A DNA stretch of 64,000 nucleotides, from contig CBFFRP010000291.1 of the NCBI GenBank assembly GCA_965644295.1, forward strand, positions 124,001 through 188,000, written 5' to 3'. The notes under the pieces were generated by a model that saw only the letters and a program-made list of their open reading frames with translations, searched no databases and had not been told where the DNA came from. Every line of letters starts with the position of its first letter. The first letter of the stretch is position 1. The DNA is from Paraphysomonas bandaiensis (Eukaryota; Protista; Chrysophyceae). The position numbers were made by a program, and so were the translations under genes. This document shows, in pieces, positions 21,702 to 28,665 of the stretch.

Positions 21702-24700
21702 CTATCTTGCCTGCGCTACTCTCTTCGTAGGTCTCGTTGTATGACTCACTGTATTCGTTTGCAACCCCTTCACAAAATCGATTTCGTATTTCTCTGGCCT
21801 TCCAGGAAAAGAAATAACTGTCTTACTACTACCTGAACCGCTCCTATAGGTTGCATAGGCACACTCAATCGAGCCTTCGACAAGGCTCTCATACCTTGCC
21901 CATTGCCCACTGGATCCCAAAATATACCACTGGCCAGTAGAACTCAACGATATATCCACCAACGTACGAGAAATCAATCTCTTATAGCCGGTAGACATAT
22001 TAGTTTGTTTACTGTTAACAAAATTAATCTCGTAAAGTTGTGGTCTGTCATCTACGTATCTGACAATAGGTGGTGTTACAACAACCGTTGGCCCTCCGTT
22101 AAATCGCCAGTTTTCATAATAACTTTCCAGGAGTTCATTTATTTCATCCGTGTAAGGCTGCATCTTTACACCATCATCCCAATGCCATCGGTAAGGAGCT
22201 GCATACTCAACAGTAGATATTTTGTTTAACTCAATTGAATTGAGCTTCAAACCTCTGAAACCCATCTCTAGGTCATCAGTACTGACGTCGGCACTCGTAG
22301 TGTGACTTGGTAAAGTACGGATGACAAATTTCGGAGCTGAAGTGATTTCGCCAAAATTAATGACAAGTAGTGGGAAGCAATAAGAGTATGACCAGTCTAA
22401 AGGATTGTTCACCACAAAACAGAAACCTTGCCGGTGAGAAACGGCACTGGATTGAAGAATGTATGCAAGAATGAGACGACTGGATCCTTTCACATAACCG
22501 AGCGACACACTTGGATCCACACCGAAGTACTCTCCAGGGCCGTAAGCCTGCCCCGCCCGTCGCTTCGGATCAAATCCTGTATCACATATGGGGGCAATAG
22601 CATTCTCCGAAGTCCCATGCCATGCAAAAAACCCTTTATCTATATCACTCCCTTTTAAAACAGCACACTTAAATCTTTCATATGCTTGGCAGTTCCACGA
22701 AGGGCCAGGGTTTGGCACCATAGAAGTAATTGGGGGTAGATTGAGGGGCCAGTTCTCACGAGCGAAGTTTTCTGCTTTCGTAATCATATTTTCGATACAC
22801 TTCTCCATGTTGTCAAGGCAATTTAGCAGTACCTGATATTCTGAGCATGACAACCCCTGGTGTCTGCCCGTCCCGTCGAAAGCCACATCACAGTTTACGC
22901 ACACTGTTGAAGAGCACAAAGAACATACTTGAAGAGTATCAGCAAGTAGGAGGATTCCATTGCAGCCAACATTAGGACAAGGACGATAGCAGTATTTATT
23001 TTTGTTAGCAATTAGCTCTGCCTTTACAGCCTTAGAACACACATCGGAGAAGCTGTCAGCGGATAAGATACCTTTGATATCACGAATGTGTACAGGTGTT
23101 AAGCATTTTCCGCACTGCACCCCCGTAATGTCATCAGATACTCTCTGAACTAGACATCGAGCACAATAAGAATGACCGCAAATACTAAAATCAGAGCATG
23201 AAGTAGATTGTTTTCCGCAGTAGGCACACGTTTGAACCGTATTGCTCTGGTCTCCTCCAATTGACTCAATGAGGCTGTCAAGTAATGATGTCACCTCTTG
23301 TATAGTTTCTGGGGGAGTATCTTCAAAAAAGTGCGCAACAATGTGGCATGAAAGCAACCGGTGCTTTATCAAACACTGATCCTTCCACTGCACCTTTAAT
23401 TCCCTGAGTTTGGAGTCACCAACGTTACCCCGTTTAAAGAGGTTGTTTACAGAGGGAGTCATATAAAATGCTATATATCTCCCCTCGAATTTATCGTAGC
23501 ACTCAGCTATATAGTTCATGAGCTCTCCCTGCTGCCTTCTCTGGCCGTGAATTTCTCCTCGAGGGCCTGCCTCCCAGTCTAGGCGCAATCCAAGTGTATC
23601 TACTTTCTCTCTAAGACGAGTGCTCTTTGACAGCTCAGTATAAAATGCTTTCTGCTTTTCAGACGAACCCATGAGCACTATACTTGAAGTAATAGTCCGT
23701 ATTGCAGAAACGGCCTTTGAAATATCCGATGGTGCTCCATCCAGTACCTCCACTTTTGAGGCTTTGCCATTCTTACTAATTTTAAGAACAGATTTCACAG
23801 AAAATCGGGAATTTAACCTCTCTACTATCTGCCGTAAATCAGGAAATAACTCGGGGTATTTAATCTTGACCTCTCCTCTGCCAGATACACGACATGCACA
23901 TTTGAGAAGCTTTGATGCGAAAGTACTTCCCTGTTCATAGAAACGGTCCGCTGCTGAGCTATCAGAAAACACAAGTGATATCACACTTTTGAAAGGAGTG
24001 TCTTTGGAATGTGTAACCAGGAGTTCAGGTGAAACGTTTTTTTGAACAAGCTTGTTCTTCTTGTTTCTAAACATAACTTCGGTGGAAATTGGATTCGACT
24101 GGAAGTATGCAGTCAATTGAACATGTGCCATATCTCTATCCCTCTTTTCTGGGAATGATAAAAAAGCTTCATGTGTACTTGCACCTTCCACACTGACCAC
24201 TACCTTCACTTCAATGATCGACAATCCTTGACGCGACAAAAAAGTAGACAACCAATCTTTGTTGAAATGCCTCGGAAAGTTACGGCAATATATAGAAAAA
24301 CGCCCAGTATTTCTGACAACCAAGTTGGCCTGTAGAAGTCCAAGCGGAGTTAATGTCTTCTTGGTAAAGTCTAGGTCAACATCTGTCTCACTGATGAGAC
24401 TCAGTCGATTTCCAAAACTCGTGTCATTTTGAAGAAAATCATGAACGGCAGTTTCAGAAGTATCTCCAGAGTCATTAAGAATGTATTCAGCTCCTTTCTC
24501 AACAATATATTGAGCTACTTTCTCTGATGCAATAATGATGACTCCACTAAATGTCTCCCTGCCTTCGGTTTCATTATGAAATGCCCTTGCCCACTTAATT
24601 ACGCTCTTGGGTAAAGATTCCTCACCACCAAAAGTGTTTTTCAACCAGACTCGAAAGTCACTAGTTGATTTAATAGGGAGGTCACGAAACTTTATTCTCC

Positions 24701-27700
24701 ACGACGGAGGAATAGCCTGAAGTGAAGATACTTTCAATCCAGCTGTTAACACAGCTTCCATTTGGCATGACCCGACAGCGACACTCACACAAGAACCTAT
24801 GCTGTTGTCAATAATCTCCTTTAACTTATCCGCAATCTCATCCCTGCAGCTCTCACGAAAATTTCTAGCATTGTATATCCGTATACATTTTGTTTTAGCA
24901 TCATATACGCAAACAGACCAGTAATACTCTTTTCGATTTATCTGCTGTCTGTGCCATATTTTGAAACTTTGTGCGATATGGATTCCGACATTGTGTCTTT
25001 CGTATACAATTTCACAAATAGGGTTATTATCCGTACAAGCACTGTGGACCGGGTGAAGACGGTCGCATATATACTCACCAGATGGAAGCTGGGTAACAGA
25101 CAGCGCCACAAAAGTCCTGTAGGGTTCACTTCGTACTTTTTGTAAAAACGTGGAGGAGTTTACAATCCGTGCTCTCATGTCCACTTTAGCAAGGCGAACA
25201 CCGTCAGGGGGATATTCTGGTACCAACACCTCTCCACTTTGATCAGAAAAATACCTTCCTAAACATATCGAGACTGCATAAATATCGTCGATTTCTTTTG
25301 CGTTCTCCTTCTGATCTATTCTGGCCTTCCGTACAATATCTTCCACCGAATGTGAGGTAGACAACACGAAGTCAAGGACTTTGTTGTTAAGGCCTTCCTT
25401 TAAACTGTACTTTACCCTGCAAGGACGACAGCCTTTGACTCGTGAACATTTTCGTTTACAATTAAGACAGTGACTATCTTTGTCACATGCCCCGGCTTGA
25501 TACCATTCCTGAAAGGCACACGCCATAAAAAGTAGATCGGAGTCGTAATTACTCGCTCGAAGAGCCACTCTGCGACGAGCCTCCTCCTTAGCCGCCTTGG
25601 TAGTTCCCCCCATAAAAAAAATATTACCTGGAGCGGATAGTACTGATGCTATAACTGTTGCCAACTTAAGTTTGTCGTAATCACGGTAGCATGCAACAAC
25701 AAAAGCACTGAGACGAGGGTCGAATGGAAGATCAGAAAATAATCGACCTAATTTTGTAGTGGAGTATTCCTTGTTAGTACCCTTTAGGGATCGATTCCAG
25801 CAGATGCATTCCACGCCTTCCAGAAGTCCAATTGAGGAGCTCATTGCTTCTTCTGATGGGGCGGTAATGAAAGGAAAGAGACGGGGATTGTAACCTAATC
25901 GAATAAGTTGGAGGATGACAGAATCAAGCGAGGCCCTAGTAATCTCCGGCTCCATGGTATCTCGCACCAAGTCACAGTCCGCATATAATCGTATACAATG
26001 TCCCGCGCATATACGTCCAGCACGTCCCTTGCGCTGGTCAGCAGATGAACGCGAGATGCGCACGAGTTCAATTACTTCTAGACGGCGGGCCTGATCGTAT
26101 CTTACTTCTTTAGCTAATCCGACATCGATCACAACCGTAACACCTGGGATGGTAAGACTCGTTTCGGCGACATTCGTAGAGAATACGACCATGCGCTTTT
26201 CTTGGTTGGCGGGATCACTGTCAAACAACAGAATGCGATCTTGCTCTTCTGGGGGCAGCGATCCAAAAAGTGGGAAAAGAACAAGTTGTGAGAGATCTGG
26301 GGCGGTAAATGCGAATTCTTTGATAGCCTGTTCTATCTCCGCCTGACCTGGAAGAAACACTAGGACATGACCATTTGTGTGTTCCTCCAAAGCTTCAATC
26401 GTAGCAGGAACCACGTGCTTAGAAATGAGACTTCGAGATGAGATTGATATAGAGGACGAAGGCGGTTTATATTCAAGGGAAACAGGAAAAACACGGCCTG
26501 GAACATCCAGGCTACCTTGTTGGTGTGACCCAAAGAAATCCAAAAATGGTTTTGGATCTATGGTTGCTGACGCTATAACCACGTAAAAGTCGTTTGGACG
26601 CAACGAGCGGATGAGCTTGGCAATACCCAGTACAATGTCTGTGTTGAGGTTGCGCTCGTGTGCTTCGTCAATTATTAGCACCTAATGAAAATGGAAGCAT
26701 GCAATAACATAATAATTGTCGATAGTATTTACAAGGGATATACCTTGATTGATGAGAGCTGACTATCAGCTTGCGACATTTTTACGAGGGCAGCATCAGT
26801 CATTAGCATGATCTCACGCCCTTCAACAGCATTGCCTTTTCCTCCAACGCGGTAGCCAACGTTTCCTCCGACTGAGGTACCGTCATATTCCATACTAATT
26901 CGCTTTGCAATAGAAATAGCAGCCATTACTCGCGGCTGCGTGCATGCTACAATGCCTCCAAAGTACTCCGCGCAATACTGAGGAATCTGAGTAGTTTTGC
27001 CTATATCAAACATGTCATTAAAATTCTATAGCTCTGGCTTATATACTTACCTGAGCCTGTTGCTGCGGTGACCACAACAACTCTTTCTTCCTGAAGACGT
27101 CTACATATCTCCTCTTTCTTAACAAATATTGGCAAAGATGCGGTAACTCTGTCAGCAGTGCGTTGTGTAAGTGACTTGGATGGAGGTACAGCGTTTGATG
27201 AAGCAGGAGCCAGACTGGGGTTCCATCCCATTGGGTGGATGAAGTCACAGTTTGCATTGATACAATCAGAGCGCAATGAGCAGATAGGTGCTCGACCTGG
27301 TGGATGTATACTAGTGCAGTCATATTCAATGCAGTAGACGCCTTCACCACACGCACTCCAACCCGATGGGTGAAGAAACAAGCATTCCTTATTCCAGCAA
27401 AACTGTAGTGATATACATGGTTTACGTCGACTGTACGGGTGATTGGCCTGACATTCAAACTCTATACAATCCTCCCCATCTATACAAGCTATTCGTGATG
27501 GTGGATGTTGATATTGGCATTCAATATCCCAGCATTTCGTACCATATCGACATGGTGCATTTATTTTAAATGAATCCGTGGTCAAGGAAGAAGTCACAGA
27601 ATGGTCGTCGTCATCATTCCATGAGATTTCTGCATCAACAATATCCTGAGCATCTAGATTTACCTTCCTATTGGCCCAGGGATGACCGAATAAGCAGTCC

Positions 27701-28665
27701 GATGCAGGGGTTGGTTGACATGATGGCTTCGTACAATCACAGTGACTGAAGGAACACTCCGAAGCACTTCGCGGACATGATCCTGTACGATAATCTCGAC
27801 ATAGAGGGGGCGTCTTTTTGGCGCTGCCACTGCGGTTCGTACTTTGTGATGCTTGTGACGAAGAATCATAGGATGCCATATTACGAACATTGGAGTGAGA
27901 TGTACGTGAAGGAGATGAGATATTCGATGAAGCCGTGGATATTTTCCTATTGGCCCAGGGATGACCGAATAAGCAGTCCGATGCAGGGGTTGGTTGACAT
28001 GCTGCTTTCGTACAATCACAGTGACTGAAGGAACACTCCGAAGCACTTCGCGGACATGATCCTGTACGATAATCCCGACATAGAGGGGGCGTCTTTTTGG
28101 CGCTGCCACTGCGGTTTGTACTTTGTGATGCTTGTGACGAAGAATCATAGGATGCCATATTACGAACATTGGAGTGAGATGTACGTGAAGGAGATGAGAT
28201 ATTCGATGAAGCCGTGGTTATTTTCCTATTAGCCCAGGGATGACCGAATAAGCAGTCCGATGCAGGGGTTGGTTGACATGCTGCTTTCGTACAATCACAG
28301 TGACTGAAGGAACACTCCGAAGCACTTCGCGGACATGATCCTGTACGATAATCCCGACATAGAGGGGGCGTCTTTTTGGCGCTGCCACTGCGGTTTGTAC
28401 TTTGTGATGCTTGTGACGAAGAATCATAGGATGCCATATTACGAACATTGGAGTGAGATGTACGTGAAGGAGATGAGATATTCGATGAAGCCGTGGTTAT
28501 TTTCCTATTAGCCCAGGGATGACCGAATAAGCAGTCCGATGCAGGGGTTGGTTGACATGCTGCTTTCGTACAATCACAGTGACTGAAGGAACACTCCGAA
28601 GCACTTCGCCGGCATGATCCTGTACGATAATCTCGACATAGAGGGGGTTTCTTTCCAGACTTCAT
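21702..28665 (-). CDS. Giant multidomain protein: CCCH-ZnF array, DEAH helicase, RRM/KH-like, RING-IBR, PARP-like ART, 2x WWE (~2283 aa)
   Basis: Exons 28665-27051, 27000-26744 and 26681-21702 join in frame via 50- and 62-nt GT-AG introns (6852 nt). Helicase motifs ATGSGKTT, CTQPR, DEAH, SAT, LVFLPG, STNVAETSLTIPG, QRKGRAGR; RING at 23228-23103; IBR; ART motifs WHGT…I…GFD…YGPGEYF; two WWE-like repeats ending YEINF/YEIDF…QTN….R. Confidence 0.9.
27663..28647 (-). repeat. Coding tandem repeat, ~3.5 x 279 bp (93 aa; two CCCH fingers per unit)
   Basis: PPLCRDYRTGSC…CSFSHCDCTKAAC…CLFGHPWANRK recurs every 279 bp with only a few substitutions between units. Confidence 0.95.

Follow-up and report, generated by a model that had tools for sequence, protein, structure and literature searches.

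The gene described here encodes one protein that joins an RNA helicase, the RING1 and IBR parts of an RBR-type ubiquitin ligase, and a PARP-type ADP-ribosyltransferase (ART) domain. It lies in a 64,000-nucleotide (nt) stretch of the genome of the chrysophyte Paraphysomonas bandaiensis (contig CBFFRP010000291.1, positions 124,001 to 188,000 of the forward strand), which we call the window. The gene occupies 21702-28665 on the minus strand and has three exons (open frame and splice sites read directly); the ART-bearing helicase gene is single copy in the genome. The protein of ~2283 residues carries, in order, CCCH fingers, a DEAH helicase, an RRM/KH-like array, RING1, IBR, ART, and two WWE domains. 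Its length of 2283 codons is arithmetic from the splice sites; the searches used exon C or sub-ranges of it. Exon C contains the DEAH motif, the helicase C-terminal domains, and everything downstream of them, so that the RING1-to-ART stretch (22350-23228, minus strand) sits within one exon of 1659 codons. Pfam recognized Helicase_C, a weak RRM_1, PARP, and WWE in exon C; RING matches were weak. The features are as follows, with residue numbers from the open reading frame (ORF) or from the AlphaFold model of RING1 through ART (model).

27051-28665, minus strand: exon A, CCCH fingers; the exon boundary interrupts the Walker A motif of the helicase (TGSG/K); from the ORF, its translation, and Pfam zf-CCCH in four stretches
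27001-27050, minus strand: intron 1, GT..AG; its removal restores GSGKTTQIPQ
26744-27000, minus strand: exon B, first RecA domain of the DEAH helicase (GKTTQIPQ... to ...LSSIK); from the frame and splice sites
26682-26743, minus strand: intron 2, GT..AG
21705-26681, stop codon 21702-21704, minus strand: exon C, 1659 codons in a single open frame
23250-25016 (ORF 556-1144), minus strand: middle array, homologous to the RNA-binding/RRM/KH domains of DEAH11-type RBR-helicases (hhalign)
23103-23228 (ORF 1152-1193), minus strand: RING1, C3HC4, reading CAYC...CGHSYCARC...CGKC
23007-23087 (model 55-81), minus strand: helices connecting RING1 and IBR, from AlphaFold secondary structure; aligned within HOIL-1L 277-424
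22845-22979 (ORF 1235-1279), minus strand: IBR, C6HC, reading CPNVGC...CSLC....CVNC...H....C; Pfam IBR
22812-22847 (model 135-146), minus strand: post-IBR helix; the VIA-align ranges reach HOIL-1 424-427 and HOIP 857
22344-22811 (ORF 1291-1446, ~155 amino acids [aa]), minus strand: compact PARP-type ART; from Pfam, profile search, and VIA-align
21966-22193, minus strand: WWE domain 1; Pfam WWE, weak match to the PARP11 WWE
21717-21935, minus strand: WWE domain 2; best stretch of Pfam WWE, ORF 1584-1654

When the C-terminal 520 residues and the helicase part were used as queries, well over 100 proteins of the same layout (helicase, IBR, PARP, WWE) were returned; we refer to these as the family. 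Conservation was counted in 70 family members or, for the ART pocket, in 27 homology-selected sequences.

A sequence-only reading of the window had placed in this stretch an RBR-like module that is cut off after the IBR and followed by an ART. Translation of 22350-23228 on the minus strand reproduces exactly the RING1 and IBR strings on which that reading was based. The zinc ligands of RING1 are C1152, C1155, C1168, H1170, C1173, C1176, C1190, and C1193, and those of the IBR are C1235, C1240, C1253, C1256, C1261, C1264, H1274, and C1279 (ORF residues). RING1 gave a weak match to Pfam zf-C3HC4 (E = 0.004), and the IBR, searched as an isolated piece, scored 27.3 bits with the Pfam IBR model (cut-off, 24.3). 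All eight IBR ligands are present in 70/70 family members, and the eight RING1 ligands in at least 65 of the 70; the shortfalls include two sequences whose RING1 fell outside the extraction range owing to extra IBR copies. Conservation of the full set of 16 zinc ligands shows that RING1-IBR is no relic in decay, and the module is under strict purifying selection. The residue two after the first RING1 Cys (C1+2) is F or Y in 61 of 68 members; a hydrophobic residue there is the usual E2 contact of RINGs. The linchpin place after the last RING1 ligand is variable in the family alignment, as it is in RBR RING1s. The number of IBRs can differ: one metagenomic member (P0022) has seven tandem copies between RING1 and ART, at residues about 500-940, and another (P0053) has more than one.

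AlphaFold modeled RING1-IBR alone with a pLDDT of 91.3, and RING1 through ART, built on 27 aligned homologues, with a mean pLDDT of 91.7 and a pTM of 0.72. With VIA-align, the RING1-IBR model matched HOIL-1L 277-424 at Z 11.0 (root mean square deviation [rmsd], 3.8; 137/151 residues aligned) and RNF216 512-661, HOIP 699-857, parkin 233-384, and HHARI 184-332 at Z 6-7. The best Foldseek matches of the RING1-to-ART model were the HOIL-1 RBR (7yui and 8eaz; E about 1e-5, best 6.5e-6) and the PARP12 catalytic domain. All the RBR matches of VIA-align cover the RING1-IBR part and never RING2. In the model, the first helix after the IBR is the counterpart of the IBR-RING2 linker helix of RBR ligases.

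The profile of the RING2 of RBR-helicases scored 88-113 bits in 10 RBR-helicases versus at most 13 bits in the 70 ART-bearing members, where it fell on their IBRs. It gave no match in the Paraphysomonas protein itself, and when the whole window was translated in six frames no score exceeded 8.6 bits; an Rcat regular-expression search also gave no match, and the stretch from the IBR to the ART holds no RING2. Nor does the second zinc module look like a functional Rcat, the outcome that would have undone the sequence-only reading: it aligns to the IBR of solved RBRs rather than to RING2, the spacing of its first ligand pair is CPxxxC, and it is without the Cys-x-His catalytic motif. Two candidate hiding places for a RING2 were rejected. 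The post-IBR inserts of members P0017 and P0019 are Cys-free, Lys/Glu-rich, and coiled-coil-like, and the extra modules of P0022 are the seven IBRs already mentioned. Judged by these profiles and alignments, RING2 is absent throughout the family and the ART stands in its place. The claim of an RBR-like module ending after the IBR thus survived on two counts: homology and collinearity with complete RBR-helicases extend to where the IBR ends (see below), and the fold of the module is that of the RING1-IBR parts of HOIL-1, RNF216, HOIP, parkin, and HHARI.

The ART follows the linker helix directly. The isolated domain scored 29.4 bits with Pfam PARP (cut-off, 26.7). Model residues 147-301 aligned with the whole PARP15 catalytic domain (VIA-align Z 13.7; rmsd, 3.0; 141 residues aligned), and PARP13, PARP12, PARP14, PARP10, and tankyrase-2 were tied within 1 Z unit of PARP15 (Z about 13). 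A profile of the family ART searched against PDB found PARP12 (best match, 2.6e-8), PARP10, PARP15, and PARP14, in alignments that span the HG[TS], G-x-G-x-YF, and S-x-x-Y motifs. These comparisons, together with that to HHARI, are the structural alignments that the sequence-only reading had proposed, and they bear out its placing of an ART where RING2 would be. With the Pfam scores, the confident model, and motifs conserved in 27 to 70 homologues, the RING1-IBR-ART anatomy is well beyond a chance resemblance. Its helical linker between IBR and ART stands for the first post-IBR helix; the second helix (model 148-165) belongs to the ART fold, being inside the range aligned with the whole PARP15 domain.

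The active-site triad is H1355 (22617-22619, in WHGT), Y1385 (22527-22529, in GEYFG), and C1421 (22419-22421, in GFCFVV), and further pocket residues are G1356, S1393, and Y1396. In model numbering, H211, G212, G239, E240, Y241, F242, S249, and Y252 are invariant in the 27 homology-selected sequences, and the ART Ser, Tyr, and Asn are present in 70/70 members. We take H211, G212, Y241, S249, and Y252 to be the equivalents of PARP1 H862, G863, Y896, S904, and Y907, that is, a complete nicotinamide pocket. The place of PARP1 Glu988 is occupied by Cys in 67 of the 70 members and by Ala in the other 3, and no conserved Asp or Glu is found in the loop ahead of the Cys strand in the family alignment. 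The strand that carries the Glu in PARP1 reads E-Y-I-V-Y there. The corresponding strand reads C-F-V-V-N here, C-Y-V-V-[DN]-N-P family-wide, and PSI/FVIF in PARP12, with Ile at the Glu place; the predicted strand (model 277-280) begins at the Cys. The sequence-only reading had given the triad as H, Y, and either C or F, with no Glu. The His, the Tyr, and the lack of Glu stand, and the third residue is Cys, not Phe: both the PARP12 register and the predicted start of the strand point to Cys rather than to the Phe of GFCFVV. The Tyr of an AYG motif was likewise rejected as the triad Tyr, because PARP1 Y896 falls in G-x-G-x-YF and the AYG Tyr is variable (Y in 40, H in 20, C in 8). On the model and the motif register, the case for an H-Y-C triad without Glu is strong but not absolute, and by its sequence this ART may define an H-Y-C class of ADP-ribosyltransferases.

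Seven other contigs of the same genome carry PARP-domain loci resembling PARP12/PARP14 (E = 1e-13 to PARP12). They have LLKHGT and YYGRGSYF motifs and a nonacidic residue, apparently Gly, at the Glu place.

Downstream of the ART, Pfam WWE scored 66.3 bits in two stretches. The W..W, Y-x-I-D-F, Q-x-N, and R-x-I-x-R motifs are visible family-wide in the WWE alignment. Both copies have the Tyr, Gln, and Arg, at positions that we take to be ligand contacting in RNF146; the single match to a solved structure was a weak one to the PARP11 WWE.

The family was found in bdelloid rotifers (many paralogues), Hydra vulgaris, oomycetes (Aphanomyces and Lagenidium), Pelomyxa, metamonads (Carpediemonas, Chilomastix, and other isolates), and many metagenomic or transcriptomic protists. 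No annotation of its proteins currently goes beyond "RNA helicase" or "unnamed protein product." In the helicase search, DEAH11-type RBR-helicases (from oysters, a brittle star, and metagenomes) ranked just below the family, after one DHX16 and among other DEAH helicases. Those RBR-helicases have the Pfam domains KH_DEAH11, RBD_DEAH11, RRM, and IBR, and a complete GGC-x-H-M RING2 at the very C terminus. BLASTP against one of them gave 2e-65 for the helicase and 2e-5 for a collinear RING1-IBR. From the end of the helicase to the end of the IBR, hhalign aligned the family with RBR-helicases over 665 collinear columns (99.85%; E = 1e-30); the alignment spans the RNA-binding/RRM/KH array, RING1 (with a shared "FPL-x-C ... 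D-I" stretch), and the IBR, and it ends where the IBR ends. The Pfam DEAH11-specific models were below threshold on the Paraphysomonas protein and most of its relatives, and several members have weak RRM_1 and RBD_DEAH11 matches at the place of the middle array; the homology of that array is thus a result of hhalign and not of the Pfam DEAH11 models. In one rotifer member, an acidic stretch ahead of the RING gave a weak Cwf_Cwc_15 match.

The Paraphysomonas genome also contains, on another contig (C236:135432-138999, minus strand), a canonical RBR-helicase paralogue in which the middle array is followed by RING1, by an IBR that an intron interrupts, and by a RING2 that reads CPSCG...SGCCAVTC.CGQDFCGLC, and so the ancestral and ART-bearing forms coexist in one genome. 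The "Helicase" RBR subfamily has been described as ancient and patchily lost (PMC2904391, Marin 2010). From these alignments we conclude that the family is most probably a paralogous branch of the RBR-helicases in which ART-WWE-WWE replaced Rcat.

RING1-IBR-ART also occurs without the helicase. Entamoeba nuttalli encodes a stand-alone RING1-IBR-ART of 358 aa with an H-Y-C triad (P0140; locus L017 6001-7128), and the 4.7 kb upstream of it contains no helicase-sized frame; RING1-IBR-ART therefore moves as a unit. In Entamoeba invadens, two proteins of 470 aa (P0137 and P0138; L018 5001-6413) have an ART of the same subfamily, with Ile at the Cys place, after a UBE2Q-like domain. The resemblance to UBE2Q is weak (PDB matches at E = 0.003 and 0.024; Atlas structure matches to UBC clusters with TM about 0.4), and the domain is without a Cys where the Cys of the GGA[LI]CMELL motif aligns, which is presumably the E2 active site. 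This fusion is circumstantial evidence that may tie the ART subfamily to the E2 machinery.

We interpret the Paraphysomonas protein as an RNA-guided mono-ART of RBR-helicase ancestry that has kept a docking arm for E2~ubiquitin or ubiquitin, a reading to which we give a probability of roughly 55%. The CCCH fingers, the helicase, and the RRM/KH array would select an RNA or ribonucleoprotein. The ART would bind NAD+ and move ADP-ribose onto a nearby protein or phosphorylated RNA end, in single units because it has no Glu for chain elongation, and the WWE pair would hold the ADP-ribose. RING1-IBR would dock E2~ubiquitin or ubiquitin beside the ART, so that both signals would act on the same target. 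A precedent is the ADP-ribosylation of RNA and DNA at phosphorylated ends by H-Y-I/L PARPs, among them PARP10 and PARP14 (PMC10450202). Coupled ADP-ribose/ubiquitin chemistry, at which the sequence-only reading had hinted, is plausible; circumstantial support for it and for E2~ubiquitin binding comes from the strict purifying selection on RING1-IBR, its aromatic E2-contact residue, and the lack of a linchpin, as in RBR RING1s.

Several points weigh against this interpretation, and the first group concerns the ART. On the whole of exon C, Pfam PARP scored 25.2 bits, which is under the cut-off of 26.7. The mapping of Glu to Cys was made from the motif register, the predicted secondary structure, and the ranges over which the structures align end to end, not from a residue-by-residue superposition. 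The domain, at ~155 aa, compares with 170-200 aa in solved human domains and falls about 40 residues short of the human mono-ARTs, and in the model the acceptor loop between the fourth and fifth strands is nearly absent, at only a few residues. Because the domain is shorter and the acceptor loop is almost absent, ART activity cannot be assumed. The same features, the lack of Glu, the marginal Pfam score, and the presence of PARP13 and RCD1 among the equally good structural matches would fit a pseudo-enzyme like PARP13/ZAP or plant RCD1, in which case the ART would bind NAD+, ADP-ribose, or a partner without catalysis and the protein would serve as a reader or adaptor linked to a helicase. We consider this quite unlikely: every member examined has the same H, G, Y, S, and Y, the pattern seen in mono-ARTs of the active H-Y-I/L type. 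The corresponding triads are Y-Y-V in PARP13 and L-H-N in RCD1. The catalytic residues of RCD1 are poorly conserved (PMC2964712). A mono-ART is favored over a dead domain because the NAD+-pocket residues are invariant.

The second group concerns ubiquitin. An RBR RING1 alone does not activate E2~ubiquitin for discharge; RBR RING1s hold E2~ubiquitin open and need a nearby nucleophile. Without an Rcat or a Deltex DTC domain, no catalyst was identified for ubiquitin transfer. The ART might then work alone, as a PARP12/ZAP-like RNA-directed mono-ART, with RING1-IBR as a scaffold that holds it against the helicase/KH array or that serves oligomerization or autoinhibition, E2 and ubiquitin playing no part. 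Consistent with this are the lack of a catalytic Cys module and of a linchpin, the fact that zinc modules can be conserved for structure alone, and the pTM of the three-domain model, which in our view is compatible with domains that keep a rather fixed arrangement. CCCH, WWE, and an H-Y-x ART are, moreover, the domain set of PARP7, PARP12, and PARP13 (PMC2964712, PMC10450202). However, the RBR-type RING1-IBR arm and its flanking helices are kept as they are in HOIL-1 bound to E2~ubiquitin or ubiquitin, the aromatic residue at the E2-contact place is conserved as described above, and the fusion of the same ART subfamily to a UBE2Q-like domain in E. invadens again involves the ubiquitin system. 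A scaffold without ubiquitin is therefore possible, though we lean away from it, both for the ART acting alone and for the structural roles proposed for RING1-IBR.

A further possibility starts from the position of the ART, exactly where Rcat would be after the linker helix. In it, E2~ubiquitin, held by RING1-IBR in the open conformation typical of RBRs, would be offered to the ART pocket, and Cys1421 or a ribose hydroxyl of the NAD+ or ADP-ribose bound there would accept the ubiquitin, the ART having taken over the job of Rcat. That this happens at all seems to us very unlikely. As an account of the whole protein in place of the docking arm that we prefer, with C1421 or the ADP-ribose/NAD+ in the ART pocket as a surrogate active site and the ART as the functional replacement of Rcat, it is a long shot. 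The Cys in 67 of 70 members is in its favor, as is the ability of Deltex ligases to discharge E2~ubiquitin onto ADP-ribose, at its 3' hydroxyl, whether a protein or a nucleic acid carries the ADP-ribose (PMC7615817, PMC10810221). On the other hand, the Cys is replaced by Ala in three members and by Ile in the E. invadens relatives, and no Cys-x-His or DTC-like catalytic constellation was identified. Pfam scans of the protein found no DTC domain, and because of this a Deltex-like reaction would need a different catalytic solution. If the ART were such a substitute, proteins or RNA ends would receive ADP-ribose-ubiquitin hybrid marks from one RNA-guided polypeptide, and this would be a third independent solution beside the Deltex RING-DTC and Legionella SidE.

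The last point against our interpretation concerns ancestry. In the helicase-core tree, the ART family is a clade (SH-aLRT, 100), but it is not the exclusive sister of the RBR-helicases, because a DHX16 sequence falls in with them and the outgroup sequences do not form one clade. This tree was left out of the evidence on origin.

Of known systems, the RBR "Helicase" subfamily (Plant I / DEAH11-12 type; PMC2904391; Pfam KH_DEAH11, RBD_DEAH11, and RRM_DEAH11) shares the most with the family: a DEAH helicase, a collinear RNA-binding/RRM/KH array, RING1, IBR, and an ancient, patchy spread across eukaryotes. It differs in having a C-terminal RING2/Rcat where the family has ART-WWE-WWE, and the Paraphysomonas protein adds N-terminal CCCH repeats. 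The cores of HOIL-1, HOIP, RNF216, parkin, and HHARI (7yui, 8eaz, 8eb0, 5edv, 4k7d, 4kc9) have the same RING1-helix-IBR-helix arm and no linchpin; unlike them, the protein described here has no Rcat and hence no acceptor domain for the E2-to-E3 thioester step.

The clade-3 mono-ART PARPs (PARP12, PARP10, PARP14, and PARP15) and the inactive PARP13/ZAP share the ART fold, the HG[TS], G-x-G-x-YF, and S-x-x-Y motifs, the absence of Glu, and the company of CCCH, WWE, and RRM/KH-like RNA-binding domains. Their third triad residue is Ile, Leu, Tyr, or Val, whereas here it is Cys; their ART has 190-200 aa, against ~155 here; their WWE precedes the ART, whereas here it follows; and here the ART is fused to a helicase and RING1-IBR. 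In the Deltex RING-DTC proteins, DTX3L-PARP9/PARP14 (PMC7615817, PMC10810221, PMC11460948), and the RING-WWE protein RNF146, an E2-binding zinc module likewise adjoins a module that binds or makes ADP-ribose. The Deltex system also has tandem WWE domains (in DTX1, DTX2, and DTX4) and KH/RRM-type nucleic-acid-binding arrays. In contrast to it, the zinc module here is an RBR-type RING1 plus IBR and not a canonical activating RING, and the writer, reader, and E2-docking modules are in one chain. An ART fused to an E2-like module is also found in fungal clade-6 PARPs with a UBC domain (PMC2964712) and in PARP6/PARP8 with RWD domains (PMC10450202), but these belong to other PARP clades, and the partner here is RING1-IBR and not an E2-like fold.

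Thus, each domain is known, and ADP-ribose/ubiquitin fusions have precedents (DTX3L-PARP9/14, RNF146, fungal PARP-UBC, and PARP6/8 RWD); the combination is that of an RBR-helicase derivative with a clade-3-like mono-ART. Literature searches found no description of an RBR with RING2 replaced by an ART, of an H-Y-C triad, of rotifer PARP-helicases, or of this family. The interplay of ADP-ribosylation and ubiquitylation is being studied actively, for instance in the hybrid marks of Deltex/PARP9/PARP14, in RNF146, and in the SidE effectors. Here, the catalytic module of an ancient RBR ligase would have been swapped for an ART, with the docking arm kept in rotifers, cnidarians, oomycetes, amoebozoans, metamonads, and algae. 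This raises the questions of whether an RBR RING1-IBR arm can work with a partner other than Rcat and whether RNA-guided ADP-ribosylation is wired to ubiquitin outside animals. The analysis also gives an origin and a domain map to more than 70 proteins that have so far been labeled "RNA helicase" or "unnamed protein." The 358-aa Entamoeba RING1-IBR-ART is a compact and convenient experimental object.

Two minor features of the Paraphysomonas protein lie outside the RING1-to-WWE region. A Cys-rich knuckle in the helicase C-terminal region (25407-25490, minus strand; ORF 398-425) has the pattern C-x5-C-x2-C-x3-C-x5-C-x2-C and matches no Pfam family. At the N terminus (window 27540-28665, minus strand) are four near-identical tandem repeats of ~93 aa (279 nt), each consisting of a CCCH finger and a Ser-rich linker, and between these repeats and the helicase are five more closely spaced C-x5-6-C-x4-5-C-x3-H fingers.

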